A DNA stretch of 52,955 nt from Fonticula alba ATCC 38817 (GCA_000388065.2 KB932202.1); one strand, 5' to 3'; shown: positions 4,554 to 51,876, counted from the first letter of the stretch. A program made the numbers and translations. Notes: generated by a model not told the origin, from the sequence alone.

Positions 4554-4751
4554 ATGTCTGTGATTTCACATTTCCTGACTGGCTTCGCCCGACCAGGGGC
4601 GGATCTTCGCGAGGGCATGCTGGCTGCCTCGTCATTGAATTCGCGGGCAGCCGCTCTGTCCGAGCGTGTGCGTTGGCGTCCACGGCGCTGTCTGTGTTCA
4701 GAGATCGTGTGCGATCAGTTGTCCTTAGACACCCGCTGACAATATCCCTCT

Positions 4752-4804
<53 letters not shown>

Positions 4805-6004
4805 TCTCTCTCTCTCTCTTTTTATCCCCCACTCGGTCGCCCGGTCTTTGGTTGTCTACACGGGACTTGTCTCAGGCAACGTTTCTCCTTCGAAAGCAGG
4901 GAATTGCCCCCTTCAAGGGTGATGCGTCATCGGATATGGTCTCTCTGTTCGATGTGAACGATCAGAAGGATGAGCAGGCGGCGGCATCCTGGAGGCAATT
5001 TCTGCCACCATACCACTTCCTACCGCCATCGGCCCGGCAGGCAGCCGAGCTTTCGGCCGGCTTCCTGCCATTGGAGGAAAGTCTCTCGGCTGGGTTCTCC
5101 CTGACTGGCTCCCACAATGAGAATGCCCTCCTTGCCGAGGACATCGACAGCCTCGGGGCTGCCTACGAGCAGGGGGCCGCGTGGGTGAACCATGCACGGG
5201 CCATACAGGCCGGGGTGCGCTTCTTATATTTGCCTCGCCCAGCTCTCTGTTCATCCCCCCCCCCCCCCCCCCCTCCCCCCCACACCGGCCACGTGCCTCG
5301 TGTCCTGCGCGTGTCTAGCACTCGCCTTTCTGACCTATGCCCCTCCCCCCGACTCCGCGGCCGCCGATGTGCCCTTTCCATCTGGAAGCTGGTCAATGAC
5401 TTCCCGCCCAGCTCGATTGATCTGACCCTCGGGATAAACCGCGAGCTGCAGGCCCTGGCCGACACTCCGATTGGGCGTCTTGCTGTCGAGCGTGACAGCA
5501 TCGAGCGCATCGAGCGAGCGGCCACCATACGCATCCTCCGATCGACCTACCACCGGCTGGAGGCAGAGACAGCCTCTCTGGCGCGCCTGCCTCCAGTCGG
5601 GACCACCGATCAGCCGGCCAGAGGCGCGGACGATGTGGACATCGGTGCGCGGGGCCGCCTGCCCGAGCCTGTCGCCGCCTCTTCACTTGCCCCCTAACCG
5701 TGGTGTCCGTTTTTCTTTCTTGCGCGCGGGCGTCCACACATCACGAATCCCTCCCCCTGTCGGTGCTTTTGATCTCCTCCGGCTTCCGGACGATTGCCCA
5801 CTCCGTCTGCTTCAATGTGTCGAAACATCTCAGAGCTGTCCCAAAATGAGCGACTCCCGCGGCTACAGCAAGCGCGATCGCTGGCGCGATCGCGTGTCCG
5901 GGCACGCACTTCCGCCATCACGCTGCAGCACTTGCGCATTCAACTTCGTGGCCACTGGGCTGATCTTCAAGTGTTCGTCATCCTTTTTGTGGCTCTCTCT
6001 CTCA

Positions 6005-6050
<46 letters not shown>

Positions 6051-9242: not shown

Positions 9243-9335
9243 CCCCCTGCTCCCCCTGCTCCCCCTGCTCCTCCTGCCCCCCCGCCCCTCCTGCTCCTCC
9301 TGCCCCTCCTGCCCCTCCTGCCCCTCTTGCCCCTC
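9243..9335. repeat. Degenerate 9-bp tandem repeat (CCCCCTGCT / CCCCTCCTG)
   Basis: Direct observation; intergenic, no supported ORF. Confidence 0.8.
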
Positions 9336-9792: not shown

Positions 9793-12184
9793 ATGCGCAC
9801 GGCCGGCCTGCCGCCGCCGCCTGCCGCCCTGCGATCCGACTCCAGCCGCGCTGGTGGCTCCCCGGCCCGCGCGCGGATCTCCCTCTTCGGCACCCCGGCC
9901 CAGCGCGCCGTCGCAATGCTTGCATCTCGGGTGGTGCGTGCCCCGGCCCCCGGAGGGGGGTGGGGGTGGGGGGGGGGGTGGCCCTGCCGTCGTCCTCGTG
10001 CCCGGCAGCTCCCCGTCACATGGACACACGCCCTCCGACCCTCGCTAACCGCTTGCACATGCGCCGACATGCTTCCCTCCCCGCCTTTCCTCCCCCATGG
10101 GCATGTGGCCTTTATCGTGTGCCCCCCCGGGTTTCCCCCCCCCCCCCTGGCCACGGCGGTGCATGCACACATAGCCGGTCTTTTTCTCGAGTCTTGATGC
10201 GCTCTACTTTTCAGAATACGAGAAGGCCCTGGCCGGGACGCTGTTGCCGCGTGCCCGGCCATCGGTTCCCCTTTTCCCGCCGACGGCCCCATCGCCGCCC
10301 ATGTTTTCCCGCCCGGCGACCATGCCGGCGACCGAGCGGCCGGTCCCTCGGGACCAGTCTTCCGCAAGCCTGACCACGGTGGCCTCGGAGCCCGGGACCG
10401 GTGTTGTCCCGGCGACCGGTGCCACCGAGCTTCACACCGCCCAAACCGACCTGGCCGAGTCGCCGGGCATGTTCCACGTCAAGCCGGCCCCCGCCTGCAC
10501 AACGGCCCTGCTGAGCGAGGTCCACGGCAGCGAGTTTGTCTGCCGCGCACTGGGCGAGACGTCGATGATGCCGATCGCCGACTCGCCCTTGCATGACGGC
10601 GGCATGGCCACCACCGGCGCCGGTCCCGGTGCCATTGCCGCCGTCACGGCCGCCGCCCCTGTCGGGCAGCCGGCCGCCGCCTCCGGCGGGCATGGAGAGG
10701 AGGGCGGCCTCCTGGCCGGTGGCGACCTGTCGGACTCCTTTTCGCTGGCCACATGTCGGCCGGGGACGCCTCTGCCTCCGTTGGTGGCCGAGCGCGAGCG
10801 TCATGCCATCGGCGCGGCCATCGAAGCTCTATCATTGCTCCATGGTGCGTCAAGCTCATCCTCCCTCGTGCCTCCCCTCTGTCCTGGCCGTTTTTCCTTG
10901 TCAGCCTCATCTCACCGATTACTTTGTGTGTTCCGTCGGATCTCCCCCCCCCCCCCTTCCTTCTCTTCCTCTTTCTCTCTCCCTCCCTCCCTCCCTCTCG
11001 GTTAGCCGGTTCCCAGTTTGCCGGAAGTCTGTCCGGTAGCTTGGTCTTCAATGAGATCTCCGTTGCCATCAGTGCGTGCCCCCAGGGGCCTTGGTACTTC
11101 CTTGTTTCCCCCCGCCCAGGAGGCGGAGGCGGCCTTGCTCTTGTCGAGTCTAACCACGTGAAATCTCCCCCCCCCCCCTCATCTTCCGCCTTCGCTTGTC
11201 GGGATAGACCATGCCGTTCGGCATCTGGGCTACCGGCGGATCCTAGTATGTGACCTGTCGTGGTACCCCCGGCCCAGCCAGTGGCCCGGGACCGAGGGCG
11301 ATCCTGCCGCCGACCTGACCACGGCCGCGGCGGCGGCCGCCGCCGCGGCCGGCCCCGGTGGCGCGGCCGAGGACGCCAGTGTCTTCACTCTGTCCATCCG
11401 CCCGAGCGGCGAGCTGATTGACGACTCGACCGGCGTTGTGGATCCGTCAGTCCCGCCGACGCCGCCCGCCCCCTCGGCGGCCGGGGCCTTTGAGGCCGGC
11501 GAGCAGCCCGGAAGCAACCAGCTGGTGATCGACATCAGCCCCGATGCCGCGGACCACGAGTACATTCCCCTGGTGTCGCGGTCTCTCCGGCGGGCCTTCG
11601 CCGTTTGGAAGCCGGATCTCATCGTCTACCATGCGGGGATCGAGTCCTTCTTCTCGGAGCCTCCTCCCTGCCAGCGGCTCCCCTCGGGCCGGCTGATTCA
11701 GTACCGGCCATCGCGGGTCACCCGCCAGGGGCTGTCCGAGCGGAACCGGCTCCTATATGAGCTGGCCATTGCAGCCGGAGCGCCGGTTCTCACGCTGGCT
11801 GGCGCGCCGCCCGTCATCCCTGCCTGCCTGGAGGATGAGGCCGATGCTGATGCCAATGCCCCGGTTGGCTTTTCTTGCCCCTCCTCCCCTGCTGCGGCAT
11901 CCTCCTCCCCGGTCGGGGTTGCCGGCGGTGCTTCCGCCCTCGGGGGCACCCCTTCAGAATCCCCTCAGCCCGGTGGTGGCTGCCCGGTGGCACCCTCCCC
12001 CACGGCCATGGTGTCTGGCCGGCCGGGCAGCGGCCCGCCAATGCCCGCCTCCTCGCCGGTGCCCGGCCTTTCGCTGCCGGTCTTCCGGGCCCGGCGGTCG
12101 GCCGCCTCCGCTGCTCGCGCGGATCTCTTCCGCGCCGCGGCCCAGGTGCTGGCCGTGCACAACCACCGCCAGTTCTTCTTCTGA
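9793..12184 (+). CDS. Histone-deacetylase-fold protein (HDAC11/class IV-like) with degenerate active site, probable pseudoenzyme; 4 exons, about 617 aa
   Basis: Exons 9793-9933 (least certain), 10175-10844, 11006-11071, 11208-12184 join in frame (1854 nt). HDAC scaffold motifs appear in the correct order: EYEKALAGTL, RERHAIGAAIEA, VFNEISVAI, RRILVCDL, VFTLSI, DHEYIPLVSRSLRRAFAVWKPDLIVYHAG, RQGLSERNRLLYELAIAAGAPVLTLAG. Confidence 0.75.
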
Positions 12185-12805: not shown

Positions 12806-14760
12806 TCACTCGAATGGGTTGATGAAGAGCATTCGATTGCCGGAGCCCCGCGGGTCGGTCACCAGGTCCGGGACAGACCGGTCGAGAAGGGCCTGCTTCA
12901 TGCGAACCTGGTCCATGGAGGCATCTTGGGCCAGCATGAGGGCCGCCGCACCGCCTGCCGGGCACAAGAGAGAAATCCCGCCAGGGCCCACCGAGCCAGG
13001 GCCGAGGGGGGGGGGGGGGAATGTGACGGTCAGCAAGGGGAGCACCGCCTGTCAAGCGGGACCCCCCTCTCGGCGAGACACCGATCGAGGGCCGCCTTCC
13101 TGGACGCGGAAACCCCCAGCAAAGGTGCACGGAAGAAAAAAAAAGGGGGCACATACTGACATGCGGACAGGCCATCGACGTGCCGGACAGGGCTCGGGTG
13201 TTGGTCCGGGAGTTGCCGATCCAGGCGCTGGTGATGCTGACCCCGGGAGCGAAGATGTCCACGCACTTGCCATGATTGGAGAAGGAGGCCCGGTGGTCGG
13301 CACGATCAACGGCGCCGACCGTGATCACCGAGGGAATGCGCGCCGGGGAGACGAAGCACGAGTCGCGGTTCTCATTGCCGGCCGCCGCCACCAGGATGAT
13401 GCCCTCCTCGATGGCGATCTTCACCGCATTGTCGATGATATTCGACCCCGGGCTCCCGAGGGACAGGGAGATGATCGACCGAGCCCCGGGCACCTTGCGG
13501 TGCTCCTTGGTCACCCAGGTGATGCCGGCCGCCACGTTGGACATGGCCCCGGCCCCGGAGGCCCCGAGGACCTTGACGCCCACCACATTGGCGGCCTTGG
13601 CAATGCCGAAGGTGATGCCGGCTGCGGGGCCAAAGCGGGTGTCAGATACGGGGGCTTCGGCCGGGGGCACGCTCGGCTCTCGGCTCGCGCATCGTGTTGC
13701 CCGGCCCCCTCCCCTCCCCTCTCTTTGCCTTTCTCTCTCTCGCCCCCCCCCTCTCTCTCTCTCTCTCTCGCACGCGCGCGCGTTCAGGTATCGCCCTCGC
13801 GCCGAGACGCCCCAGGAGGGCCCGGCTGCCGGGTGGTCCCCGCCTCCCGGGCCCTCTTCCTGGCAATGCTGACCCGTGATACGTACCGATGGTCCCGGCA
13901 CAGTGTGTGCCATGGCCATTGTCATCATAGGACCCGGGCTTGCCCAGGGATCCGCCGCGGTGGAAATTCCACCCGGCCCGAGCACGGGTCCCAAACTCCC
14001 GGTGGTCATGCTGGATCCCGGTGTCCAGCACGTAGACATCCACCCCGCGGCCACCCTCGGCGTCGAAGTAGTACCGCCGGTCGAGAGGCAGCTGGCGCTG
14101 ATCCACCCGGTCCAAGCCCCAAGTGGGGTTCAGCTGGATGGTGACATCGCGCGTCTTCGCGCCGGGGTCCTCGGCCCGGGGCGGCGGGGGGACGCGCGGC
14201 GCGCTGGCCGGCCCATTCGGAGCGTCACCCCCCCCGCCCGGGCGCTTGGGCCCGAGCAGGGGGGGCAAGATGCGCCGGTCGGGGACCGGAGCCTCGATGG
14301 ACACCACCAAATCGTGCTCGATGTACTCGATGATGTCCGAGCGGTTGCGCACGCGCGCCAGCAGGTGCGGGCTCAAGCGGGCGGCCAACGCCCGAAGCCG
14401 CGAGCCAAAGGTGATCATCCGCCCGTCCGGGGCCCAGCGGGCGGAAAACTCCCCAAACAGCCCATCATCCACATCGCTGCGGAAGACGATGATATACTTG
14501 TCGGGGATGATGACGGCATTGCGCTCGGCCTGCAGCAGTGGCACCAGCTCGCGCAGGCGACTGACCGTGGCCCGGAGCGGTGTGCGCACCGTGTCCGGGG
14601 TCATGGACGCCGGTGGTGGGGGCCAGATCCCCGGGCCGGTGGGCATTTCCGCATGTCGACGGTCGCGGCTCTCGGCCGGTGCGGCCACCTCCAGCGCTCG
14701 AAGCACCCCGGCCAGCAGGAGAAGCAGCACAACCACGTGCGGAAGGGTACGTCGAGCCAT
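12806..14760 (-). CDS. Secreted subtilisin-like serine protease (S8A, proteinase K type) with signal peptide and I9 prodomain; 3 exons, about 495 aa
   Basis: Exons 14760-13887, 13621-13157, 12954-12806 (1488 nt). Signal peptide [22 protein letters not shown]; I9-like KYIIVFR...[10 protein letters not shown]; mature-domain start [13 protein letters not shown]; intact triad VLDTGI / [12 protein letters not shown] / GTSMACPHV. Confidence 0.95.
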
Positions 14761-15485: not shown

Positions 15486-16640
15486 CTACTCATCGTCACT
15501 GTCGTCATCCGACAGCATGAGATCACGGTTCTTCAGGGCGTTGCCCATGTGATAGTGCATCTTGCGGTGGTGGGCAAATTCCTGCTTCCGCTGGAGAGCT
15601 TTGCGGGATGGGGATTTGGATTTGGGTTAGCACACGCTGCCGGGGGGGGGGGGGGGGGGCCGGGGGCCGGTCGCCGGGGACGACGCTTGGCCGACGCCTG
15701 GAAAGGGCCGCCAGGGTCGGGTGCCAAGGTGCGGCCGGGCGCGGGGCCATTTTACGCAGGGTCCCGGCACTGATCCGACGGCAGGTCCGTCCCCGGTTGG
15801 GCGCGGCTTGGATGCAGAGCGCGCGCGCGCGCGCGCGTGTGGAGGGGGGCGTGCAGTGAAGAATGGCCCGGCACACACAACACGGGGGAGGGGGGGGGGG
15901 GGGGGGGGAGATGCAAAATGGGCGCCGGTGCGTACCCTCAGGGCTGTTGTCCTCGTCCTCCTCGTCGTCGGAGGGCGGGTGGTCGAAGTCCGGGACGAAG
16001 TCGACATTCGCACTGAAGGAGGGCGAATGCTGCGGATCGTTGGAAGAGGGGTCCTCCATCTCCGGGGCCGCCTCGAAGATGGACTGCGCCATGATTTCTT
16101 CGAGCTTCTCCGGGGCGGCGATATTCCCGTCAACTGGTGGGGCGTGCCAGGCGCATGCGGTGCATCCGGGGGCGGCGCGGCGCGGCGCGGCGCGGTGCGG
16201 CGCGAGGTCAGAGGCATGGGTCAAGGCCAGGGGGGAAAAAAAGCCGGCAGGCGATGGACACCCGAAGTGAGGGCCGAAGGGGGAGCGCACTGTCACGGAT
16301 GCCGATGATCTCATCGCCAGCATCATTGTAATACACAAAGGGGGTCTTTGGCTCGGTGATCTTCATGGTGGCCGTGCGATTGGATTCATTCTCGCGGAGG
16401 TTTTCCTCGTTCCAAGTGATTGACCGCTTGGCGGGGCTAGAGGCACCCCGCAGGCGTGGGCCAGGAGCACGGACAGGCCAGGAGGCGACAGCGGAGATGC
16501 AAGATGTGAGGGTGAGGCTGGGCTCGTGGGGGGAATGGCATCCGGGAGAGAGAGATGGCGACAGGGACATACTGCTGGTGCTGGTCCAACTGCTGGGAGG
16601 CCCGGGCGGCTGAGACGTCCTTCAAGATCCCGTCGGTCAT
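15486..16640 (-). CDS. PPP1R2: Protein phosphatase 1 inhibitor-2 (IPP-2/Glc8); 4 exons, about 174 aa
   Basis: Exons 16640-16573, 16436-16291, 16133-15936, 15598-15486 (525 nt). Motifs GILK (PP1-binding SILK-type), KRSITWNEENL, KITEPKTPF (phospho-Thr site), acidic tract, and FAHHRKMHYHMG (F..KRK.HY type). Confidence 0.9.
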
Positions 16641-21789: not shown

Positions 21790-24700
21790 ATGGTCGACTT
21801 TCAATTCGACACGCTTTCTTGGTTCCTCCTCAGTGCCATCGGTGTCACTGCCCTGGCCCTTCGCTACCGCAACGGTCTCATGAGCCCCCCGGATCTGACC
21901 TTCTCGCGCTCCTCGCGCCAGGCCCTGCCAGTTGAGGGCACGCGTCTTGAGGTTCGTCCGGTGTCCCCCCGCCCTCTTACTCCCCGCCCCCACTTTGACG
22001 ACACCGGACCGTGGACACACACACACACACACATCTACATATCTGCTGCTCCCTGCTTGTCCTCCTCGCTCGCCTTCCCCCTTTCCTTCGTCCTGTCCTG
22101 ACCCCCGCCACCTCCTCGCATCCACCCCTGCGGGGAACTCAAAGGGCGAGACCGCCACCTACCGGTCATCCTCCCTCCCTCGAGATGCACCCCTGATCAA
22201 GGAGATGATCGCCCCCCTGGCGCATGCCAAGACCCTGTACGACATGTTCCTCAATGGGCACTCGATCTCCCGGGACCGCCCGTGCCTGGGCCAGCGCCGC
22301 CTTGGTGACGAGTCGGCCCCCTTCGAGTGGCGTACCTATCATGAGACTCTCGTCCAGATGGAGGGTCTCGGTGCCGGTCTCACCAAGCTCGGTGTCCCCA
22401 CTGGCCAGGGCGAGGGTGCTTCCATCGGCATCTTCATGCGCAACCGCCCGGAGTGGACTATCGGCGAGTTCGTGCGTGTCCCATCCTAAAAGTCCCCCGC
22501 CGGGTGGCCGCGCTCGCCTCCGCTCCGCCCCCCCCCCCTCGCCTCTTTTGTTGCCGCCTCTCGGCGCCTCGCCATCCCCCTAACCCTGCCCTGTTCCTCG
22601 CTTCGGGTCCCCCTGCCGATCCTTCCCCTCGCTCTCTCCCATGCTCCCTCGCCCCCTGTGGCCTGCCCCGGCATGCGGCGCTCCTCCCTGTCCTCGCCCC
22701 GGGGGGCTGGCTCCAGTCTTGCTACCTGTACAGCCGCTCGCTGATCCCGATCTATGACTCCTTCAAGTGTGACCAGCTGAAGCCCATCATCCAGGGCCAG
22801 GCCATGCGTGCCATCATCGCCACCTCGGCGCAGATCGACATCCTGCTCGCCGGTCGCGAGGAGTTCCCCTCGCTGACGATCTTGGTTTGCGTTGATCCGT
22901 GCGTGTGCCTCCTTGCGTCTCTCTCTCTCTCTCTCTCCCCCCCCCCACTCCCCTGAGCTGGGGCCGGATGTCTTTTTTTTTATCCTCCACTTTGGCTCTG
23001 ACTTGTTGAGACCACGCACCCGCGCGTGCCCTCCATATAACACACACACGCGTGCCCGTAAAATCGCCTGTACAGGATCACCGAGAGCCAGCGCGCCCTC
23101 TCTACCGAGAAGGACCTTCGTCTGATGACCTTCGACGAGGTGGTTCAGCTCGGCAAGGACAACCCCCTCCCTCACCAGCCCCCCTCGTTGGACGATGTGG
23201 CTGTGGTCTGCTACACTTCCGGCACGACCGGCACCCCGAAGGGCGCCATGCTGACGCACGGCAACATCATGGCCGTCATCGCCGCCGTCTTCTACGACTT
23301 CCCGATGACCGTCCAGCCGGACGCCAATGACCGCTACCTGTCCTACCTCCCGCTGGCGCACATGCTGGAGCGCATCATCCATTTGCTGGTCTTCTCGGTG
23401 GGCGCCAAGATCGGCTTCTACCGCGGTAGCGTGCTCCAGCTCCCGGCCGACATGGGTGCGTATTGGTCCCCCCCCCCCCCCCCTGTCTTTCCCCCTTCGT
23501 CGCCATTTTCGTGCACCTCTGTGCCTGGGGCTGAGGAGGGTCTGCGGCACCTCCGCCGGGGAGAGGGCGCGCGTGGGAAGGGGACACACCCCGCCGATTT
23601 GACTTGCCACAAGCCTCCCCCTCTCAGGACGTTTTCCCCACTGACACGGCACCATCTGCCCCGGCTGCGCCTGGCCCGCCCGCCCCCCCCCCCCCCCCCT
23701 CGCCCTGGCTCACAGAGCTCCTCGATCCGACGTACTTCGTTTCGGTGCCGCTCATGCTCAACCGTGTGTACACCCGTATCATGGCGACTGTCGAGAACTC
23801 GGGCTTCATCAAGCGCTCGATCTTCCACCTGGCTTATCAGCAGAAGCTGGCCCTCCTGGATCGCGGCATCATTCGCCGTGATACCATTTGGGATCGCTTG
23901 GTCTTTGACAAGATTCGTGTTCGCTTCGGCAAGAGCTTCAAGGGTACGCTTCTGTCGGTGCCCCTTTTCCTCCCCATGCTCGCTGGTGGCCTCCTGCGCA
24001 CCAAAAAAAAAAAAAAAATAATGGGCCGCACGCCAGCAGCGGCAACGCCAGCCGAATGCTAACGCCCTTTTGCCTCCCTCTCTCCCTCTCCCCCTCCCCC
24101 TCCCCCTCCCCCTCCCTCTGCCAGCCATTGTCACCGGTGCCGCCCCGATTGCCCCCGAGGTGAAGAAGTTCTTCCGCATCGTTTGTGGCTGCCCCCTGAT
24201 CGAGGGATATGGCCTGACGGAGACGTCGGCCGTGTCGACCCTGCAGCTGATCGGCGACTACAATGACGCCCACGTGGGGCCTCCCCTCCCCTGTGCGGAG
24301 GTCAAGCTGGTCGACGTGCCGGAGATGGGGTACTTCGCCTCGGACGAGCCCAACCCCCGTGGCGAGATGTACATCCGCGGCCCGTCGGTCTTCAAGGGGT
24401 ACTTCAACGAGCCGGAGCTCACGGCCAAGGCCCTCACCGCGGACGGCTGGTTCCGCTCTGGGGACATTGCCGAAATCCTGCCGGCCGGGAACTTCCGCCT
24501 GATTGACCGGCGGTCCAACTGCTTCAAGCTGGCCCAGGGTGAGTTTGTGGCCCCGGAGCGCATTGAGAATGCCCTGGTCGGCGCGGGCCTCGTGGAGAAT
24601 GTCTTTGTCTATGGCGACACCAGCCGGTCCATGCTGGTGGCCATCGTCGTGCCGGATATCGAGTCGCTCCGTGAGTGGGCCGCCGAGCGTGGCACCCCGG

Positions 24701-25552: not shown

Positions 25553-25557
25553 CTATC

Positions 25558-25602
<45 letters not shown>
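25553..25602. repeat. Compound (GT)n(GA)n microsatellite downstream of the acyl-CoA synthetase
   Basis: Direct observation; another (GA)n lies at about 26499-26550. Confidence 0.9.
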
Positions 25603-26793: not shown

Positions 26794-29284
26794 ATGCTGT
26801 CCCGCTTCACCCACGGCGTCGTGAGCGCCACCCGCCAGCACGCCCGCACTGCGGTTCGTCCTCCCCTCCTCTGCTCTCCCCTGGCCATGCGTGCTCGTTT
26901 GGGAGGGATGGGGGAATGGCGGCCGTGCCGCCATGGCCACCATCGCCACCGCCGCTGCCGCTGCTGTCCTTTTTGAGGGTCTCGCCTTTCTTTCTAACCC
27001 AGGACTTTTTGCTTTTCCCCCCGGCCACACGTAGGCGCCCATGGCTGCCTTCTACTCTTCCAAGCCGGTGCGCCTGGGCCTCTTTCCCATTCCCCCGCCC
27101 CTTCGGCTCCGCCCCCCCCCTGCTCGTGCGCTCCTGCGATCTAACCACTTCCATGCACCTGTGCGGTCTCCTGTGTCTGCTGCAGTCCCCCCTGGCTCGT
27201 CTCGAGGAGCTCCGCGAGAAGGCTGCCCTCGGTGGCGGCCAGGCCCGCATTGATGCCCAGCACGCTCGCGTACGTTGCTCCCCCTCCTGGCCCCTCTCCC
27301 GCCGGTCCTCCTGTGGCCCGATACTGATTGCCTTCCCCCTTGCCTGCTCTGCACACAGGGCAAGCTCACCGCCCGCGAGCGCATCAACCTCCTTCTGGAC
27401 CCCGGCTCGTTCCGCGAGACCGACATGCTGGTCGAGCACCAGTGCTCCTCCTTCGGCATGGAGAAGAACAAGGTTCGCCGACCTGCTGACCCTGGGGTCT
27501 CCCCCCGCGCCCCCCTCTTCCGACAACCTGTCTGCCCGTCTCCCTCTCTCCCTCCCTCCCTCCCTCCTTCGCTCTTCTCCCCGCCTGCTCGCCGCTCACC
27601 CAGCCCGGCTTGCCCCTCGCGATTCGTGCCTTCCCTCTTATAGATCCCCGGTGATGGTGTTGTCACTGGCAGCGGTACTGTCAATGGTCGCCCGATCTTC
27701 GTCTTCAGCCAGGACTTCACCGTCTTCGGTGGTGCCCTGTCCAAGGCTTACGCTGGGAAGATTTGCAAGGTACGCTCGTGCTTCCCTCCTCCCCGCCAAA
27801 AGGGCGGGCGGCACCCGTGGAAACCCGGCCCCGCGCATGTCTGTCCCTCAGCCCTATCCTGACAGCCCCGTGCCCCGACTCGCCGGTCCTGCCTCTCTCT
27901 CTCTCGGGCCCTGTGCCTGTCTGCCTGTCCCCCCTCCCCCCACTGGCGCCAAAGATCATGGATAAGGCCATGTCCGTTGGTGCCCCTGTCATCGGCCTCA
28001 ACGACTCCGGTGGCGCGCGCATTCAGGAGGGTGTCGACTCGCTGGCCGGCTATGCTGATATTTTCCAGCGCAACGTCATGGCCTCCGGTGTCATTCCCCA
28101 GATCTCCCTGATCATGGGTCCCTGCGCCGGCGGTGCGGTCTACTCTCCGGCCATCACCGACTTCACCTTCATGGTCCGCGACTCTTCCTACATGTTCGTC
28201 ACTGGCCCGAACGTCGTGAAGACCGTCACCAACGAGGATGTCACCCAGGAGGAGCTCGGCGGTGCCAAGACCCATACTTCCAAGTCCGGTGTCGCGGCCC
28301 TCTCCTTCGACAACGATGTCGAGGCCCTGGCCCGGTACGTGCACATTGAGCACTTGCCCCCCCTCCGCGTGCTCTTGCTGAGCCTCCCATCTTGCCGCCA
28401 TCCCGGCCCCTCCCCCCCGCCCCCCCCCCCCCCCCCTCCTCTGACATGCCCCTTCTCTTGGCCTCAGCCTGCGCGACTTCATCGACTTCCTGCCGCTCTC
28501 CAACACCGAGAAGCCCCCTCAGCGCGCCACTCTGGACCCGGTCAACCGCGATCTCTCCTCCCTCAACCACATCGTCCCCTCGGACCCGACCAAGGCCTAC
28601 GACATGAAGGACATCATCACCAAGATCGCCGATGACAACACCTTCTTCGAGGTCATGCCCGACTATGCCAAGAACATTGTCATCGGCTTTGCCCGCATGG
28701 ACGGCAAGACCGTGGCCGTGGTCGGCAACCAGCCCATGGTGGCCTCCGGCTGCCTGGACATCAACGCCTCTGTCAAGGCCGCCCGGTGGGTGCGCTTCTG
28801 CGACGCCTTCAACATCCCCATCATCACCCTGGTCGATGTGCCGGGCTTCCTGCCGGGTGTCAACCAGGAGCTCAACGGCATCATTCGCCATGGTGCCAAG
28901 CTCCTGTACGCCTATGCCGAGGCCACCGTCCCCAAGATCACCGTCATCACTCGCAAGGCCTACGGTGGTGCCTACGATGTCATGGGCTCCAAGCATCTGC
29001 GCGGTGATGCCAACTACGCTTGGCCCACCGCCGAGGTGGCCGTCATGGGCGCCAAGGGTGCCGTGGAGATCATCTTCCGCAACCGCTCCCCCGAGGAGCT
29101 GGCCTCCCTGGAGGCCGACTATGTGGAGAAGTTCGCCAACCCCTTCGAGGCCGCTCGTAAGGGCTACATCGACGATGTCATCCAGCCGGCCGAGACCCGC
29201 GCGCGCATCATCGAGGACCTGGCCGTCCTGGAGCGCAAGAAGATCTCCAACCCCTGGAAGAAGCACGGCAACATCCCCCTGTAA
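26794..29284 (+). CDS. PCCB: Propionyl-CoA carboxylase beta chain, mitochondrial; 7 exons, about 537 aa
   Basis: Exons 26794-26853, 27035-27067, 27186-27269, 27359-27472, 27644-27769, 27955-28334, 28468-29284 (1614 nt). Motifs [63 protein letters not shown]-terminal WKKHGNIPL; Arg/Ser/Ala-rich presequence [19 protein letters not shown]. Confidence 0.97.
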
Positions 29285-30530: not shown

Positions 30531-33500
30531 TCAAATGTCGGAGTGCATCCCGTCATCGGCAAGGACAAGTCGGGCGGGCGGTGCCCGGGCGGCAACAGGC
30601 GCAGCAGAGGCAGCGGCAGCCCCGGCCTCTCCGGCGACCAGGCGCCGCGGCGGCGGCGGCAGGATGTCGTCCGGAGGGGGCTTCGATGGCCGGGGAGGTG
30701 GACCCCGGCGGCGGCTCTTGGCCGCCGGGGCCGTATTCAATGGAGTCGCAAAGGAATCGTCGAAAACATCGCCAGTGCGCAGGGAATTGATCAGGGCATC
30801 TAGTTGGCCATCTCCCTGGACATCGCCGGAAGGCGGCTCGGCCTTCTTGATCTCCCGGGCCAGAGCCCGAGCCATGTCCTTCGGGTTGAAGTCCTTCGGC
30901 AGGCCGGCGGCCTTCTCCTCGGGCTTGCGCTTGCGCTCCAGGGCAAGGCGCCACTCGGCCAGGTCGTTGCGTGCCTCGGTCCACTGAACGCCAAAGCGCC
31001 AGAAGACACTGAAGAACTCCTCCGGGGTGACGGAATTGGGATCCTCCCCGAAGAGGGTGGCCTGCTCGGTGAGCAGGTTCCGCGCCTGGTCAAAGGCCTT
31101 CTCCATCTTGGCCAGGGCCTTGGAGCTTTCATCGTAGAAGGGACGCATGACCTCCAGGAACCGACGCACATCGGCCGGGGCGGCATCGGGCCCGCCGGCC
31201 GCCGAGGAGGCCATCTTGTCGAAGGCCTCCAGCTCGGCCTCCAGTTGGTTGACACCACGCCGGAGGAAGGTCATCTCGGCCTGCAGGGTTGGCAGCGAGA
31301 CGCGCACCGCCTCGGCCGCCGGCTCGAGCTCCTCCACAAAGGCCATCAGGGCAGGATAGCGTGTCTCCACCACCTCCACCAGGAAGTGCAGGAGCGTGTG
31401 TCGATCAAAGTCCGCGTGCGAACTGCGCGTGTCGGAGAGCTACGGGACGTGCGGGAGGGGGCGGACGAGAGTTAGCTTGTTTGTCTCGCTCCATGGCCAG
31501 CTGGATCCTTCCGCAGCCGGGATCCCGACAGACCGGGTTCTAATGGCGGAGGAGGAGACGGCACGACAGCTGGCCGTACCTTGAGCAGCGCATCAATCTT
31601 GAAGCCATAGGCACCGCCACGGAAACCGGTGTTCAGATAATTCCCCACGGCTAGAATGAGCTCCAGGACCTGGCGGAACATGACCGCCGAGGAAAGGGCC
31701 GAAGAGCCGCCATTGATGCGAGCAATGTCGCGGGCGCACTCGCTGCTCTTCTCGGCGAACGTCCGCCGGAAGCTGATGCTCTCCAAGCGCCCCTGGAAGC
31801 GCTGGATCTTGCTCACCTGCGGGAGAGAGAGAGAGAGAGAAAGGGGAGGGGGCAACGCGAAGTGCAAGCCGTTTGCACGGGGGAGAGAGAGAGAGGGAGA
31901 CAAGGGATTGAGGGAGGGGAAGCACCGAGGTGAGTAGGTGCCCGGTCGCAACGGATCATCCATGAAGCCAGGATGAGAGGAAGAAAAGGAACAAGGAGCG
32001 TGGTACGCACCTCCCAGAAGAATTTCTCGCAATCGCCCAGCTGATCGAAGTTGTCGATGTGCTCACGGATGAGGGTGATCTCCTCGTCGGTCGGGACAAA
32101 CTTCAGCAGCTGCTCCGAAATGTCCGACTCGATGAACCCGGCATCCAAGAGGGTGATCTTGGACAGGAGCTCGGCACGTGGGAGCTTGGAGTTCTTGAGC
32201 AAAATCACTGCACGCCGAGCGGGGAGGGAGCAAAAGCGCCACAGGCAGGTCAGCAAAGGGTGATAGCGGCACTCGCGGCAGGGCGCGCAAAGCAAGTGAA
32301 AGCCCGGGGCCGGATTCCGATTTGGACTCGGACTCAAGCGACCAGGCAGGCAGGTGGGCGCGCATCAACGCACGGCAGTTTTGCGACCGACGGCCATCGA
32401 TGACACAGATCTCGCGGGGCTTCTCCTCGGCTGAGGCGCCGCCGGCGGCACCATCGGCCGACTCGGACACCGGCTTCACATACACCGAGAAGAGGTTCTC
32501 CATCTCGTCGTATTGGGGCCGGAGAACGCGCAACGGGCCCTGATCGGACAAGTGCGACCAGAGGGTCTTGTCGATGGCGTGGTTCGGGATTTTGGTCCAG
32601 TTGAAGGCCTTCAGGGGCTTTTGCGACAGCTTGGCCGGCTTGTTTGGACGGGCCGAACGAGCGGCCGCCCCGGCACCGGGCATCCCCGGGGGAGGAGGCG
32701 GCGGCGGCGGGCCACCCCCACCACCCGGCAGGGGAGGCGGCGGCGGCGGCGGCGGCCCCCCGGCAAACCCAGGCAGGGGCGGAGGCGGAGGCGGTGGCGG
32801 ACCACCGCCAGGCAGTGGCGGCGGCGGGGGCGGCGGCGCGCCACCAGCAAATTCCGGCAGTGGCGGAGGGGGCGGCGGCGGCGCGCCCGTGGGGAAGGTC
32901 CCGGGCATCGGCGGCGCCGGTGGCGGACCGCCGTCCGAAGCAGCGGCCTTTTCCAACTCGGCCTTTGCCTCAGCCAGGGCCTGGGGAGAGGGGGGGGGGG
33001 CGGAGGGGCGGAGGGGGAGGAGAAGGAGCGAGACACCGGAGGACCGTGTTAGCTTGGTTAGAGGAATGACCCAAAAGAAAAAGGGGAGATTTTCAGAAGC
33101 CCCCCAACAACGGGGGGGCAGGCACAGGGAGGAAAGCACCTTCTCGGAAAACTCCTTCAGAAGCTGCTCGATGTCCTGGTTTTCGGCGCCCAGGCGCTCG
33201 CGCACAAAGGCCGCAATCTTGTCGATCTCCAGCTGCGAAGCGCGCAGCTTCAGCTGGGCCTCCGGGTCGGCGGCAGCGGCCCCGGCGGCGTCCGACGGAG
33301 TGGCCGCCGGCTTCTCCTCCAGGCCCTCGACACCTTGGCTGGCCAGACGAGCCCACCGCTGGACCAGGGCCTGGATGCCATTGGCCGACAAGGCACCGGC
33401 AATGGCCGAGGGCGTGAAGTCGTGCGGCATCAATGCGGCCGTGGCCTCCGGCAGTGGATCGCCCGATTGCGGGTCACGCGGGACAATCACATACTCGGCC

Positions 33501-39744: not shown

Positions 39745-40313
39745 TTACATGTGCAAACACCGCAACGTTGTGTTTGCATCAAGGGAGTTCACCAGAGCAC
39801 GACGAACAGCCTCGGGGGACCCGTTCATGGCCCTCGAATCATCCTCGGCAGAAGAAGAGACATCTGGGCCATCACTGTCGATCGGCCAAGAGAAGACGTT
39901 TGCTAAGGTGCATCGACACCATCGTCCCGGCACACGCAAGGAGGGCATGTAAGTTGTCTGATGGCCATTTGTGTGTCTGGCGGGGGGAGAAAAGGAACCC
40001 CTGAGGGAGGGGCTCGATCGGAGCGCAGGGGGAAAAAAAAACGCACAGGAAAGGTCAATAGTATGAAGGGTGGAGTTCTGGGCGAGGACCTCGGCAAGGT
40101 GCGGGAGGATATCCTCATCGATCTGGTTGCCTGGCGGCCCGGGCGGATGGATCCAACAAGGGAGGCAGATGCAGGTCAGGGGCCGGGTCGGGAGATCAAG
40201 CAAAGGATGCATGCGCATGAAAAGGCCCGATCCTCGGTCTCCATCGCGAAGCCCCGGAGCATTCATACAGGCGCATACCAAAGAACCTCTTTATAGATGC
40301 ATGGATGTGTGCA

Positions 40314-40345
<32 letters not shown>

Positions 40346-42022
40346 TGTGTGTGTGTGTGTGTGTGTATGGATGGACACATACCTCGAAGAGACAGAGACT
40401 CGAGAGAAGTGTTCTCCTTCAAAGCGCCGAGCAGCAAAATGACGCCTTCCGAAGCAATGCGATTGACTGGGACGTCCGCTGTCAGTAAAGCCGGCCACTT
40501 GCATGTGCGGATTTGCACGGGCCCGGAAAGGGAAAGAGGGAGCAGAGAAAGGCCCAGCATGCTCTACACGCACAGTCCAGCTGCAGAGACTTCAACTGGG
40601 CGCCACGCTGCAGGGCGATGGCCAGAGCCTGCAGGCCCACGCAGGAAATGCCGTTGTCCGAGAGGTCAAGGTGCTCGACAACCGCTCCGCGGAGCAGCGC
40701 CGCCGCCAGCTGCAGAGCTCCCATGTCACCCAGCATATTGTGAGGAAGGGCCAGCGACCGAACGGAGAGGTTCCGTGTCGGCCGGCAGGAGGCGGCGAAG
40801 GTAGGCTCGGCCTGGCGCTCAGCACCACAGGTCATCGGGGTCACCTTGCCAGCAAAGTGCCGATGGATGGTGAGATACTCCTCCGGGCGCCGCCGAGACC
40901 CAAGAGCCAGGCGCATCACCTCGTCATAGTCCGGCGGGGCCATCGATGCCGGGTGATGATGGCCGAAAGCCCGATGGGATGGGCAGCAGGAGGGATCCCT
41001 CACGGTACTGGTGGCAGTAGCCGCGGCCGGGTCGGACAGGTCCCCAGCAAGCGCCTCGGCCAATGCCAAGGCCCCCTGCGAGGTGATGCACTGCCCAGCC
41101 AGAGTGACCTCAGTCACGGAGGTGCACTCCCGCAAGGCGGTGGCAATGCTGCAGGCACCCTGATCGCCGATGAGATTGCCTGAACACGAGCCACATGCTG
41201 TTAGACGATGCATGGGCACTCCCCCCCCCCTCCCCGCAGAAGCAACACAGGGGGGAGGGAGGGAGAGAGAGAGAGAGGAGCGGCAGAGGGCGTGGTGCTC
41301 CCACCGCATTGCCAGAAGGGCACGTACCGGTGAGGTCGATGGAGCCGACACGGTGCGGACCGGACAGGAGATTGGCCAGCAAATCGACATCCGGCTGGCC
41401 CAGAGGGACGCCTGCGTGCGTGCGTGCGCGCGCGCGCGCGCGCATGGGATGCATTGCCAGGGAGCAGGGAGACAGGACGATGGCGAGGATCAGCGGGCAG
41501 ATGGGTCAGAGCCCGGCAATCGGCGAGGCGACGGGGCAGCCATGGGCTTTGCCCTGGGCGCGGGTTATCCTGCGGAGGGACGCACCACTGATGCTGACCG
41601 AGCCGTGGCGGGGGCCGGCAGTGGCGGCGGCCCCCGACGCGAGGGATGAGCCATCGGTCGGACGAGGCCCAAGGAATGCCTTGACAACATCCAGCACAGG
41701 GCTGGATACATGATTGTCAAGGCGACCACGTATATAGCCCTCCGGGTCGCCTGGGAGACAGGGCCCGCGGCCGGAGGAGAGCGACAACATGCGGTGGGCC
41801 AGGGTTAGGCACGGGTTCCGACACATGGTCGTACGCAAATCACCAACAGGAGCACGGTCCCTCGGTGTCTCGGTCTGCGCCCTCCCCCCCCCCCCCCCCC
41901 TGCCTCCCCTACGTGCCCGGAGTCCCCCCCCCCCCCCCCCCCCCTGCCCGGCCCTCGGGGCCGGGGGCCGAGGACACCGACAACGCACCATGACCCGAGG
42001 AGAGAAACTGGCCAAGTATCAT
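39745..42022 (-). CDS. Leucine-rich repeat protein, ribonuclease-inhibitor (28-aa) type; about 7 exons, both ends uncertain
   Basis: Exons 42022-41989 (tentative), 41750-41586, 41411-41328, 41179-40574, 40466-40383, 40130-40047, 39902-39745, all phase 1. Repeats such as IDLTGNLIGDQGACSIATAL, LDLSDNGISCVGLQALAIAL, LQLDFNRIASEGVILLLGAL, LSLRGNQIDEDILPHLAEVL. A further short 3' exon (possible donor GTAACG at 39748) cannot be excluded. Confidence 0.75.
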
Positions 42023-44226: not shown

Positions 44227-47172
44227 CTACAAGCCGGCGGACTCCTTGGCCAGGACATTCTCCAGACCGTCCATGATGTCGAGCGCACACTTGGGAATGC
44301 GGGTGCCAGGCCCGAAGATGGCAATGACACCGTGCTGGCGCAGGAACTCATAGTCCTGGATGGGGATGACACCGCCCACCACGACGCTGATGTGCGGGGC
44401 ACCGAGGGCCTGGAGCTCCTTCACCAGGGCCGGGACCAGGGTCTTGTGCCCGGCGGCCTGGGACGACACGCCGATGGCATGGACATCGGCGTCCACCGCC
44501 TGGCGAGCCACCTCGGCCGGGGTGGCGAACAGCGGCCCGACATCAACATCGAAGCCCAGATCGGCCAGACCGGTGGCCACCACCTTGGCCCCACGATCGT
44601 GGCCATCCTGGCCCATCTTGGCCACGAGCAGGCGCGGCCGGCGGCCATGCTTCTCCTCGAAGGCGGCGGTCCGCTGGCGCGCGATGTCCAACTCCTCCGA
44701 GGCGCGGAACTCGTCGGCATACGCGCCACTGAGAATGCGCGTGGGCGGCTGGTAGCGACCGCCACCGCCACGCTCGATGGCCGCGGAAATCTCGCCAACC
44801 GTGCACCGGGCCCGGGCAGCCTCGATGGCCAGAGCCAGCAGGTTGTCCTCATCATTGGCATCATACTCGGCGCTGTCGTCCGCGGCCAGGGCCAGCCGGC
44901 GGCCGGCCGCCGCCTCCAGGGCAGCCAGAGCGGCATCCGCGCGGCCGGCATCGCGCTCGGCACGCACCCGCTGCAGGCGGTCCACCTGCTTGTTGCGAAC
45001 CGACTCATTGTCGATGGCCAGCACATCAACCAGCTCGGTCTCCTCCTCGGTCAGACGGTACTTGTTGACACCGACGACCACCTCGCGGCCGGAGTCGATG
45101 CGGGCCTGCTTGCGGGCGGCCGACTCCTCGATGCGGAGCTTCGGCATGCCGGAGGCAATGGCCTTGGCCATGCCCCCGAGGGACTCCACCTCCTCGATGA
45201 TGGCCTCGGCCTTGCGGACCAGCTCGTCCGTCAGGGCCTCCATGGCATAGGACCCGGCCCACGGATCGGCGATCTTGGCGATGTGGGCCTCCTCCTGGAG
45301 GATGAGCTGGGTGTTACGGGCAATTCGCGCCGAGAAGACCGTCGGCAGGCCGATGGCCTCATCCAGGGCATTGGTGTGCAGGGACTGCGTGCCGCCCAGG
45401 GTGGCGGCCATGGCCTCGATGGTGGTCCGGATGACATTGTTATGGGGATCCTGCTCGGTGAGCGACACACCGGAGGTCTGGCAATGGGTACGCAGCAGGA
45501 GGGACTTCTCGTTCTTCGGGGAGAAGTGCTTCTTCACCTGGGTGGCCCACAGACGCCGGGCAGCGCGCAGCTTGGCAATCTCCATGTAGAAGGACATGCC
45601 GATGGCGAAGAAGAACGACAGCCGCGGCGCAAAGGCATCAATGTCCAAACCGGCACGGACACCGGTGCGGCAGTACTCAATGCCATCGGCAATGGTGAAG
45701 GCCAGCTCCAGGGCACAGTCGGCCCCGGCCTCCTGCATGTGGTAGCCGGAGATGGAAATGGAGTTGTACTTCGGCATGTTCTGCAAGTGCCGATGCGCGC
45801 GTCCGGCCAGGCAAGGGCACATGCCGCATCATGTGGATGGGGAGGGGGGGGGGGGGGGGAGTATAGGTGAGTGGCCCGAGCGCCGGGTCCGGAGTTGGTG
45901 ACTTGCCCCCTGCCCCGGCGGTGGTCGCGAAGGATGGGCCCCGTCTGAATGCGTACCTTGGAGGTGAAGGCGAAAATGTCGGCAATCACCTGCATGGACA
46001 TGGCCGGGTTGTAGATGAAGGTGTTGCGGACCATGAACTCCTTGAGGATGTCATTCTGCACGGTACCAGCCAGCTCATCCAGCCGGGCGCCCTGCTCCTC
46101 GGCGGCCACGATGTACATGGCCAAGATGGGCAGAACCGCGCCGTTCATGGTCATCGAAACGGACATCTTGTTCAGGGGAATGCCATCGAAGAGAATCTGC
46201 AATTCCCCGGGGAGGGGGGGGGGGAGAAAAAAAAAGGTCAGCACGGGACAGGAAGAACGCGCGAGGTTTCAGTGGTGGGCGTGTGGGCCGGGTCTTTTTT
46301 TTTTCTCCTCCCGGGTGGGCCCACCCCCGCCGGATGCATATAGAGCCACGGACCTTGACATCCTCCACGGAGTCGATGGCTACACCGGCCATACCGACAT
46401 CACCCACCACACGAGGATGATCGGAGTCATAGCTGGCATGGAGGTCAGTCGCAGGCAAGGGAACTTCGAGGCGGGCATGAACACATGCCACATGCATGGC
46501 CATGATGATATGGGAGGGGATTGACGAACCCGCGGTGGGTGGCCAGATCGAAGGCCACACTCAGACCCTGCTGGCCGGCGGCCAGGTTGCGCCGATAGAA
46601 GGCGTTGGACTCCTCGACGGTGGAGAAGCCGGCATACTGGCGCACGGTCCAGGGGCGAACCGTGTACATGGTGGCATACGGGCCACGAGTGAAGGGGAAC
46701 TTACCGGGGAGCTCGCCCTCAGCGGTGGCCATCTGCTCGGGGGTCAGGTCGGCGCCAGCCGCGCCGTAGACCGACGCCGGCAGATCGGCCCGCGTGTAGA
46801 CCGGCCGCATGGGGATACCCTCCGGGGTCTGGAAGATGAGGTTGTTCGGGTCGCCACCGCGCATCTCCTTGGAGGCCATCTTGGACCACTCGGCATTGAG
46901 GGGACGCTCGGTCGAGGCGTCATTGGCACTGGAGGCGAACTGGGCGGAGAGTTCCACAGGGATTCCGGGCTGTTAGGGGACTTGGCCACGAGCAGTCGCA
47001 CCGGCGAAAGGAGCTGAGGAGGGGGGGGGAGGAGGAAAGGGGAAGGAGGACAGAAGCCGCGCAAAACAAGCCAGAGGGGGCGCACCATCCGGCGGGCAAA
47101 ATGAGGCGCGAGGGCGCCGGCGCTGCGCGAGGCCGAGGCCAGGCGCATCGAGCGGGCGGCGACGTTCAGCAT
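44227..47172 (-). CDS. MMUT: Methylmalonyl-CoA mutase, mitochondrial, adenosylcobalamin-dependent; 5 exons, about 799 aa
   Basis: Exons 47172-47086, 46969-46530, 46432-46354, 46196-45957, 45780-44227 (2400 nt). Motifs [76 protein letters not shown], and B12-binding [10 protein letters not shown] (DxHxxG); presequence [17 protein letters not shown]. Confidence 0.98.
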
Positions 47173-48946: not shown

Positions 48947-49016
<70 letters not shown>

Positions 49017-50809
49017 NNNNNNNNNNNNNNNNNNNNNNNNNNNNNNNNNNNNNNNNNNNNNNNNNNNNNNNNNNNNNNNNNCCCCCCGCCGCCGCCGCCG
49101 CCGCCTCCCTGCTCGGCACGCATGGCATCTGTCCAGGCGGCGTGCAGGCCACCCGCGATGCCACCGACCATGAGCCGCTCTTCCGCCAGGAGAGCTTCTT
49201 CCACTACCTGTTCGGCGTGCGGGAGGCCGGCTTCATGGGGGCCGTGCATTTGAAGACCGGGCGGTCGCTGCTTTTCGCCCCCCGGCTGCCCGAGGCGTAC
49301 GCCGTCTGGATGGGCACCATCCATCCTCCGTCGCACTTCGCCAGCCGGTACTCCGTTGACGGGGCCCACTATGTTGATGAGCTGGCCGCCGTGTTGAAGG
49401 CCGAGTCCCCGGCTGGCAGCGCCCCGCCCACGGTGTATGTCCTGCACGGGGTCAACACCGACAGCGGCAACACCACCACCCCGGCCACTTTCGAGGGCAT
49501 CGAGGATTTCCCGGTGAACCGGTCCACCGGCGGTGATGGCCTGCACCACCACCTGGTGGAGTGCCGTCTGATCAAGACCCCGGCCGAGGTGGAGCTCATG
49601 CGCTATGTCAACTCGGTCAGCTCGCGCGCCCATGTCGATGTCATGAAGTGGGCCCCGACCGCGGTGACCGCCCCCGGCGGGCTGAAGGAGTACCAGCTGG
49701 AGGCGCGCTTCATGCACTTCTGCTACCACCATGGCGGTGCGCGCTTCATGTCCTACACTTGCATCTGCGGTGTCGGTGACCATGGTGCCGTGCTGCACTA
49801 CGGCCATGCCGGCGCTCCCAACGATGGGGCCTGCACTCCGGGGCAGATGGCTCTGCTGGACATGGGCTGCGAGTATCATGGCTACGCGTCGGACATCACC
49901 TGCAGCTATCCCATGGGCGGGGTCTTCTCGGCCGATCAGCGTCTCATTTACGATGCTGTCCTGGCCTCGGTCAAGGCCGTCGAGGAGGCCATCCGTCCGG
50001 GCGTCATGTGGCCGGACCTGCACATCCTGTGTGGTGCGTTCTCCTCCGGGCCCCTTTTCGTGTTCCCCCTCTGGCGCTCTTCTCCCGGTGTTGCCCCCGG
50101 TTCGCCGCTGTTCTGCTCGGGGCCGCCCTTGGGGCCGTCATTTTGTCTCCGGCCTTTTCCTCCCCCCCCCCCCCCCCCTCCCCCCTCCGCATCCTTCCTT
50201 TCGGCCAATCCACCCCCACTTACCTACCACCCCCTCGGCCCTCCTGCAGAGACGGTCCTCGTTGAGCGCCTCCAGGCTGGCGGCCTCATCAAGTCCGACA
50301 CCCCTGCCCGTGAGCTGGTGGACCTGGGCGTGGCGGCTCTCTTCATGCCGCACGGCATGGGGCACCTGCTGGGCATTGACACCCATGATGTGGGTGGCTA
50401 TCCGGCCCACATGGACAACCCGGAGGATCTGGTCCCGCGTGCCACGCGCCCCGGGCTCCGGTCGCTGCGCTGCGGTCGCCGCCTGCTGGCCAACATGGTG
50501 CTGACCGTTGAGCCGGGGATCTACTTCATCGAGGCCATCCTGCGCCCGGTGGTCGGGACCTCGGCCGCTGACGTGACCGGCTCCGACGCCCACCCCCTGG
50601 CCCAGTACCTGGAGACCGACCGCGTCCGTGCCCTGCTGGACTCCCGCTTCGGTGGCATTCGCATTGAGGACAATGTTGTGGTCACCGAGACCGGGTGCGA
50701 GAACCTGACCGATGTGCCGCGCGAGGTGGACGACATCGAGGCTGTCTGCGCTGGCCGCCAGACCTGGGCCTTCCGCAACCGCCTGCCCGCGCACAATGCT
50801 GCCGACTGA
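48621..50809 (+). CDS. PEPD: Xaa-Pro dipeptidase (prolidase, M24B); 3 exons, about 559 aa
   Basis: Exons 48621-48843, 49137-50033, 50250-50809 (1680 nt); the N-gap lies inside intron 1. Motifs LFRQESFFHYLFG, VLHYGH, LLDMGCEYHGYASDIT, PHGMGHLLGIDTHDVGGY, LTVEPGIYF, GGIRIEDNV, so the metal ligands are intact. Confidence 0.96.
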
Positions 50810-51364
50810 AAAAAAAAAAAAAGGAAGAAGACCCCTCCACCCTGGGCAAGCAGCGGGGGCTGCCGGAAAGCGACGGCCCGGCTGCAGCACATGATGCTGA
50901 CAGGAAACCGCCCACCGCCGGTGTGGCCCCCGGCCTTTTCGGTCTCTTGTGGGTGTTCCCCTCTTGTTGCTTCTGCCCTCCCCTTTTTGCCTTTCCCTCG
51001 GGGATGGCGGTGCTCCCGGCGTAATAAAAAAATGCCACGCTGCTGGCTCCCCTCCAGTCCCTCCTCACTCGCCCTGCAGACAATCGCAAAATTTCCAGCT
51101 TGGGTCAGGGAGAAAAGAAAGAGTGATCGGGGAAGTGGTCGACACACACACACACACACACACACACCGATCAGAGGGCGATGCGATTGTCCTGGCCGGA
51201 AGGAAAAGCCAACAAAAGCAGGAGGACGGAAGAGGGAAGCAGCGACCAGGGGAGGCTGACCAGGTCTCGGGCTATTGTACAGGAGGATTTGAAAGGGGGA
51301 GGAGGGAGCGGGGAGGTGCAAGACACATATGGCAATGACTGGCGTCGACGCGAATCGAAGGGCG

Positions 51365-51876
51365 TCACGAAAAGAAGAAGAACACAAGGCGCTCGTGGAC
51401 TGCCTTCTCCAGCTCCTTCGGCGAGTGGCGCGGATGTTCCTTAGCCCATTGGGCGAGGCTCGCGGCAAATTGGACCTTAAATAGGGCGGAGGGGGGAAGG
51501 CGGCAATGTCAGCGCATGTGTGTGGCTGTGTGCGTGAGCTGCTCGGGCAGCGAGCTGGCGCGCACCTGGCGGCGCTTCTGCTGCGACTGGCAGATGGACT
51601 TGAAGGTGGCGTTGGCCAGCTTGTATTGAGCGAATGCCTTGTAGAGGGCAGGTGCCCGGCCCTCCGGCTCGGCGAGAGCACTGGCGTGCAGGTACTACTC
51701 GTGCGGGATGCCCGGAGCGAGTCGGCGGCCGAGCCGGGCGAGGAGAGCAACAGGTCAGTGCAAGAGACCAGGCGTGAGAGGCAAGGCAAAAGAGACTGCC
51801 CCTCGTGTGGCCGGAGGGGAGCTGTTCGACGTACGCGCTCCAGCCCGTCCAGGAACTCGGGCTCGGTGAAGAACAT
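51365..51876 (-). CDS. Hypothetical small helical protein, 3 exons, 93 aa (missed by the ORF track)
   Basis: Exons 51876-51835, 51694-51566, 51475-51365 are all phase 0 with donors GTACGT and GTGCGC and acceptors TAG and AAG. Codons are mostly C/G-ending. Product: MFFTEPEFLDGLERYLHASALAEPEGRAPALYKAFAQYKLANATFKSICQSQQKRRQVQFAASLAQWAKEHPRHSPKELEKAVHERLVFFFFS. Confidence 0.7.

Follow-up and report, generated by a model that had tools for sequence, protein, structure and literature searches.

Introns of Fonticula alba follow a lineage-specific 5' splice-site (donor) consensus, an exonic G followed by GT(A/G/T)CG(T/C), in otherwise ordinary U2-type GT-AG introns. We examined these donors in a 53-kb window (52,955 nucleotides, nt) of strain ATCC 38817 (assembly GCA_000388065.2, scaffold KB932202.1). 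"The window" refers to this whole stretch, and positions are counted from its first nucleotide, which corresponds to record position 829047 as worked out from the record ranges. Selection maintains C at intron position +4 and G at +5 as recognition bases, and GC content does not explain them. Donors with C at +4 have been described in a few other protists, to which Fonticula adds a further case. The reading we favor, to which we assign a probability of roughly 0.7, joins this selected consensus to a U1 small nuclear RNA (snRNA) that would carry G in place of U at position 5.

Donor sites of independently placed introns

Twenty-one introns were verified without any use of positions +3 to +6: ten by complementary DNA (cDNA) contigs, six by exact protein mapping, four by homology (one in PEPD and three in a formin gene) and one by a motif-blind parse. 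Their donors are strikingly uniform. C occupies position +4 in 20 introns and T in the remaining one, with neither A nor G there, and +5 is G in 21/21. Position +3 is A in eight, G in eight, T in four and C in one, +6 is T in 14, C in six and G in one, and the last exonic base is G in 16. The genes that the sequence-only reading had named (subtilase, the methylmalonyl-CoA mutase MMUT, PEPD, ACSL, PCCB and formin) are all confirmed by Pfam. For most of the window, which is 67% G+C and contains nine assembly gaps, the gene calls of the assembly supply gene spans and the lengths of the products.

The most direct evidence comes from spliced cDNA contigs of two runs, X1 and X2 (2012, two samples from one study), placed on 22450-28449. 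These contigs skip GT..AG segments, and their depth is zero across the intergenic stretch 25850-26650. They define four introns of ACSL and six of PCCB, all on the plus strand, and the donors are GT-N-C-G-(T/C) in 10/10. In ACSL, intron 2 (22472..22716, GTGCGT) is given by the joint 22471>22717 in both runs and intron 3 (22899..23075, GTGCGT) by the adjacent pieces 22717-22898 and 23076-23454. Intron 4 (23456..23715, GTGCGT) lies between the pieces 23076-23454 and 23715-23943, with a 1-nt ambiguity set by GT-AG. Intron 5 (23944..24124, GTACGC), which ends in CAG at 24124, lies between 23715-23943 and 24127-25031, with two record letters between the pieces. In PCCB, the joints are 26852>27034 for intron 1 (26854..27034, GTTCGT; cut +1), 27066>27185 for intron 2 (27068..27185, GTGCGC; cut +1), 27269>27359 for intron 3 (27270..27358, GTACGT), 27470>27642 for intron 4 (27473..27643, GTTCGC; cut +2) and 27766>27952 for intron 5 (27770..27954, GTACGC; cut +3). 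For intron 6 (28335..28467, GTACGT), a loose cDNA end after 28334 resumes at 28468. These ten introns are absent from cDNA contigs of two samples and are thus removed from mature RNA; for the rest, continuity of the encoded protein argues for removal.

Two minor observations concern the same region. At 25368 (+), in the 3' untranslated region of ACSL, the assembly has T and both cDNA contig sets have C, which could reflect RNA editing, a difference between strains or a mistake in the assembly. Two raw-read RNA runs under the same species label (X12 and X13) gave only poly-A and poly-C matches on 22450-28449 and apparently contain no ACSL or PCCB transcripts of Fonticula.

When the annotated proteins of MMUT and subtilase were mapped exactly to the DNA, a single GT-AG solution was left at each of six junctions. 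MMUT, one exon of which is 100% identical to the Fonticula alba protein at NCBI, lies on the minus strand and was mapped through P0001. Its intron 1 (46940..47085, GTGCGC) falls in the non-conserved presequence. The other three junctions, of intron 2 (46433..46529, GTTCGT), intron 3 (46197..46353, GTCCGT) and intron 4 (45781..45956, GTACGC), fall in ungapped, near-invariant ortholog blocks. Mapping of P0121 placed subtilase introns 1 (13622..13886, GTACGT) and 2 (12955..13156, GTATGT, the single verified donor with T at +4), likewise on the minus strand.

Homology fixed four further introns. The PEPD open reading frame (ORF) contains 75 in-frame codons without counterpart in human prolidase: ORF residues 318-392 are unmatched, and residues 328 to 332 of the human chain are contiguous. 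An ungapped alignment returns once the GT-AG pair at 50034..50249 (+), an in-frame insert of 216 nt relative to the human enzyme, is taken out as an intron; its donor is GTGCGT. For three junctions in the FH2 domain of the formin, all frame-compatible GT/GC-AG pairs were listed and the joined peptides were scored against ten homologs. The best mean scores went to introns on the minus strand at 32208..32373 (GTGCGT), 31817..32010 (GTGCGT) and 31440..31579 (GTACGG). A search of the representative library with the formin gave no self-match.

The last verified intron comes from a parse that was given only "GT", the length of the annotated product and codon usage. At the annotated 729 amino acids (aa), this motif-blind parse of ACSL recovers all four cDNA-proved introns and adds a fifth, intron 1 at 21952..22144 (+), with the donor GTTCGT.

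Fourteen further introns, described below, are model-based and derive from length-constrained parses of an IPP-2 gene, a 143-aa gene, a leucine-rich repeat (LRR) gene and an HDAC-like gene; their +4 is C in 12 and T in two, and their +5 is G in all 14. Across all 35 introns, +4 is therefore C in 32 and T in three and never a purine, G stands at +5 in 35/35, and +6 is a pyrimidine in 34/35, the exception being the GTACGG of formin. These figures bear out the sequence-only reading, which had counted C in 40 and T in four of 44 introns at +4, never A, with G at +5 in 42/44 and a consensus of GT[G/A]CG[T/C]. Our tally leaves out about nine of those 44, namely about six in the CENP-K model and the 5' introns of formin and PEPD.

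By the usual marks these are U2-type introns, as they begin with GT and end with AG in 21/21 verified and 14/14 model-based cases. Acceptors are CAG in 22, TAG in nine and AAG in four, and none of the 35 donors resembles the U12-type donor /RTATCCTT. With T at +4 in only 3/35, the donors lack the U majority of the yeast-type +4 U dialect; a C majority at +4, followed by G and then a pyrimidine, places them in the +4 C dialect (GTRCGY / GYGCGY type). The introns range from 89 to 337 nt in length at a density of about 2 to 3 per gene. None of the 35 contains N, and the nearest assembly gap is 459 nt away. On the sense strand, the introns are C-rich and A-poor with long poly-C tracts ahead of the acceptor, for example in 46197-46353 and 23456-23715.

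Base composition and selection at +4 and +5

Intron interiors consist of A, C, G and T in fractions of.11,.445,.23 and.21. Against this composition, C at +4 in 17 of 18 introns has p=1e-5, and G at +5 (21/21 against 23% G) departs from expectation even more. Intronic base content therefore does not account for +4 C. The sequence-only reading had taken the total absence of +4 A as the distinctive point. A is indeed missing from all 35 donors; the emphasis was overstated, because A makes up just 11% of intron bases, and its lack alone gives p=0.12 at n=18 and about 0.006 at n=44. The strong signal is instead that +4 is nearly always C and +5 nearly always G.

Parsing of eight genes leads to the same donor type. 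In the motif-blind parse, 23 of 32 chosen donors are GTNCG, a type to which 9.4% of the GT sites on the sense strand belong (p=3e-17). A parse restricted to GTNYG donors stays free of stops at the exact annotated length in 8/8 genes with a coding score above that of every other donor class tried, and it coincides with the unrestricted optimum in 5/8. Hexamer counts over the whole window show GTGCGT 70 times against 27.8 expected, and GTAAGT (4) and GTGAGT (6) both fall under expectation. A comparison of sense and antisense strands (68 versus 43 for GTNCGY and 8 versus 24 for GTRAG) hints at the same preference, but codon usage confounds it, and it was given no weight. Microsatellites of the GTGTGT/GTGC type are abundant (GTGTGT 157 times against 13.6 expected), for instance at 29353-29390 and 39405-39420, and they inflate counts of GTGCGT-like hexamers outside genes.

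It might be argued that the consensus is an artifact, either of selection bias in hand-built and annotated gene models or of the mere richness of the introns in C. Such an explanation could draw on the intron composition, on the missing A that by itself is not significant in the smaller sample, and on the behavior of the parser. Run without a donor model, this parser was exact for MMUT and ACSL, failed for subtilase when that gene was left out of training, and was unreliable in low-complexity genes; its use was confined to a statistical test and to the introns given here as model-based. The ten introns set by motif-independent cDNA joints, all with C at +4 and G at +5, refute the artifact, and the excess of both bases over composition also stands against it, so that we regard it as hardly credible.

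A proposed U1 snRNA with G at position 5

Predicted pairing of the donors with the 5' end of U1 offers indirect evidence on the form of U1. The mean duplex energy is -3.9 kcal/mol with the standard U1 and -8.7 kcal/mol with G at position 5, and cDNA-proved donors such as tcGTGCGT would reach only -1.1 kcal/mol with the standard form. The spectrum at +4 follows what pairing with G5 would allow: C, a Watson-Crick partner, is far more frequent than the wobble partner U, and purines are excluded. All three donors with U at +4 are GTATGT, which is otherwise fully complementary to U1. The sequence-only reading had suggested a compensatory U1 (G5), a U6 (ACGGA) change or altered METTL16/SNRNP27K dependence. 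Of these, donor spectrum and duplex energies together fit, and favor, a U1 with G at position 5.

We propose that the U1 snRNA of Fonticula most likely has G instead of U at this position, its 5' end reading 5'-ACGUACCU-3'. With such a U1, +4 C would form a Watson-Crick pair and the rare +4 U a G.U wobble, and A or G at +4 would be mismatched. Donors and U1 would have co-evolved, probably under GC-biased mutation pressure. Once U1 departs, +4 C would stand unpaired opposite the central A of the U6 ACAGAGA box, as it necessarily does in other lineages with +4 C. The fuller version of this model, toward which we lean only slightly, is that Fonticula represents a second, independent co-evolution of U1 (U5 to G) and donor (+4 A to C), in which the U6 ACAGAGA box is standard and methylated by METTL16 and +4 C lies unpaired opposite the N6-methyladenosine (m6A) at the hand-over from U1 to U6.

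The closest parallel is Mastigamoeba balamuthi, in which GUGCGC donors are accompanied by a U1 with ACGUAC (Roy and Bowser, bioRxiv 10.1101/2022.06.08.495308). Both organisms have donors of the GUGCGC/GUACGU type with C at +4, a purine common at +3 and C frequent at +6, and both are moderately intron-rich (about 2.5 introns per gene in Mastigamoeba, about 2 to 3 in Fonticula). In contrast to the amoebozoan Mastigamoeba, Fonticula is a holomycotan from the sister lineage of Fungi, and any U1 change common to the two would be independent. T exceeds C at +6 in Fonticula and T at +3 is fairly common (4/21). Thecamonas trahens and five Mamiellales (including Micromonas), with donors of the +4 C / GYGCGY kind, resemble Fonticula in their GC-rich genomes and in preferring C at +4 followed by G; they keep a standard U1 5' end (bioRxiv 10.1101/2022.06.08.495308), and Fonticula would differ from them in this respect. 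Saccharomycotina share with Fonticula a lineage-wide move away from +4 A; theirs led to GUAUGU donors and is linked to loss of METTL16/SNRNP27K, and the rare +4 U donors of Fonticula are of this very form, GTATGT. There, +4 switched between A and U while the splice-site-pairing regions of U1 and U6 stayed invariant in 240 species (Parker et al., PMC10581693), whereas the Fonticula switch was to C (32/35) with U as a minor variant. Entamoeba, with GUUUGU donors and a U1 of AACAAAC, also matches an altered donor consensus with an altered U1 5' end; it differs in the bases and positions concerned and in being intron-poor.

Several points weigh against a changed U1. A search with Rfam at gathering threshold detected no snRNA gene either in the window or in a further two loci, one just past the end of the window (L001) and one on scaffold KB932206.1 (L003), the latter two yielding four tRNAs only. 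A pattern for the U1 5' end matched the window at chance level, and one for the U6 ACAGAGA box had no match in it, so the U1 change is read from the donors and not from a U1 or U6 gene. The donor sample comes from a single 53-kb window. Pairing with either form of U1 leaves C at +6 (6/21) and T or C at +3 (5/21) unexplained. The hexamer alone is insufficient as a donor, as 50 GTNCG sites in verified exons are unspliced. On the side of the dialect, two perfect donors of the canonical type stay unspliced, AGGTGAGT at 24536-24544 (+) in the final exon of ACSL, through which the cDNA runs uninterrupted, and CCGGTAAGT at 46696-46704 (-) (donor GT at 46704) in the conserved exon 2 of MMUT; they serve as illustration only, because those 50 exonic GTNCG sites are likewise unspliced. 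Finally, donors with C at +4 need not imply a changed U1, as Thecamonas trahens and the Mamiellales show.

This last point opens the way to an explanation in which Fonticula has kept the standard U1 ACUUACCU and +4 C arose from GC-biased mutation, being tolerated or read by U1C, LUC7, U5/U6 or other factors. Besides the lineages studied by Roy and Bowser, the Saccharomycotina, which shifted from +4 A to U with no change of snRNA (PMC10581693), set a precedent for it, and it accords with the failure to turn up a U1 gene in the window, L001 or L003. With a standard U1, however, several cDNA-proved donors would form just a split 2+2 helix of -1.1 kcal/mol, and G at +4, which could wobble with U5, would not be expected to be missing from all 35 donors when G makes up 23% of intron bases. 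We therefore consider a standard U1 unlikely. A change on the side of U6 could drive the preference at +4, alone or along with U1: the central A of ACAGAGA might be replaced by G, or METTL16 or SNRNP27K might be lost or altered. The +4 base lies opposite the central m6A of the ACAGA box, and preference at +4 tracks METTL16 and SNRNP27K in Saccharomycotina; yet the box is invariant in all 240 species surveyed, and METTL16 loss goes with +4 U and not +4 C (PMC10581693). The contents of the window have no bearing on U6, and we judge this explanation quite improbable, well behind a retained standard U1.

The RNA core of the spliceosome changes very rarely, as the invariance of the U1 and U6 pairing regions across 240 yeast species despite switches at +4 illustrates (PMC10581693). 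So far, only the preprint on Mastigamoeba describes +4 C donors alongside a matching G5 change in U1. If our reading is true, Fonticula would supply an independent example from another supergroup, at about 2 to 3 introns per gene, and would bear on whether snRNAs and splice signals can evolve together when no intron loss has gone before. In the library of papers searched, none tied Fonticula alba to U1, and among the 20 papers mentioning it with introns and splicing, no title concerned its splice signals. In practical terms, gene finders trained on GTRAGT donors will mis-annotate the Fonticula genome.

Model-based introns and other loci

The model-based introns differ in how firmly the parses place them. 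In the IPP-2 gene (minus strand, 174 aa), the motif-blind parse at annotated length gives 16437..16572 (GTATGT), 16134..16290 (GTGCGC) and 15599..15935 (GTACGC), and in the 143-aa gene, also on the minus strand, it gives 51695..51834 (GTACGT) and 51476..51565 (GTGCGC). For the LRR gene (minus strand, 404 aa), blind and self-trained parses agree on 41412..41585 (GTGCGT), 41180..41327 (GTACGT), 40467..40573 (GTGCGT) and 39903..40046 (GTGCGT). Two other LRR introns come from the self-trained and GTNYG-restricted parses: 41751..41988 (GTGCGT), where the blind parse took GTCATG 6 nt upstream, and 40131..40382 (GTATGT), where it took GTCCAT 6 nt downstream. A search with the LRR gene returned a mechanical 245-aa ORF, P0124, as its sole match. 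In the HDAC-like gene (plus strand, 676 aa), blind, self-trained and restricted parses concur on 10845..11005 (GTGCGT) and 11072..11207 (GTGCGT); the intron at 9934..10174 (GTGCGT) is weak, since it appears only in the parse restricted to +4 C/GTNYG and has a coding score near zero. A search of the PDB with the HDAC-like exons gave no usable alignment spanning a junction.

Three rounds of self-training left the CENP-K gene and the 5' part of the HDAC-like gene without a solution. The CENP-K model at 4554-7136 (+) has a near-zero or negative coding score, and its annotation may be wrong. A blind parse gives it the odd donors GTCGCC, GTGTTC and GTACAT, the GTNYG-only parse scores -48, and neither is convincing at the annotated length. 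Annotation might also be at fault at two gaps: length arithmetic for the annotated PEPD (535 aa) puts an intron across the gap 49017-49081, and for the annotated formin (1407 aa) across the gap 35029-35092, and both may be annotation artifacts.

Outside the window, motif-blind length-constrained parses of two genes (642 aa and 79 aa) at 96-3194 of L001 pick GTGCGT three times and GTACGT once. A candidate +4 A intron in L003 (GTGAGG...(CA)n...GAG; 13343-13436 (-), 94 nt), called in a 108-aa hypothetical model, was rejected as probably spurious, because the excised segment consists of a (CA)n microsatellite and nearly any 94-nt deletion keeps the frame open. The tRNA genes of L003 lie at 967-1039, 8489-8562, 8727-8800 and 9184-9265, and three of these form a cluster in the 800 nt upstream of a subtilase paralog that lacks introns.

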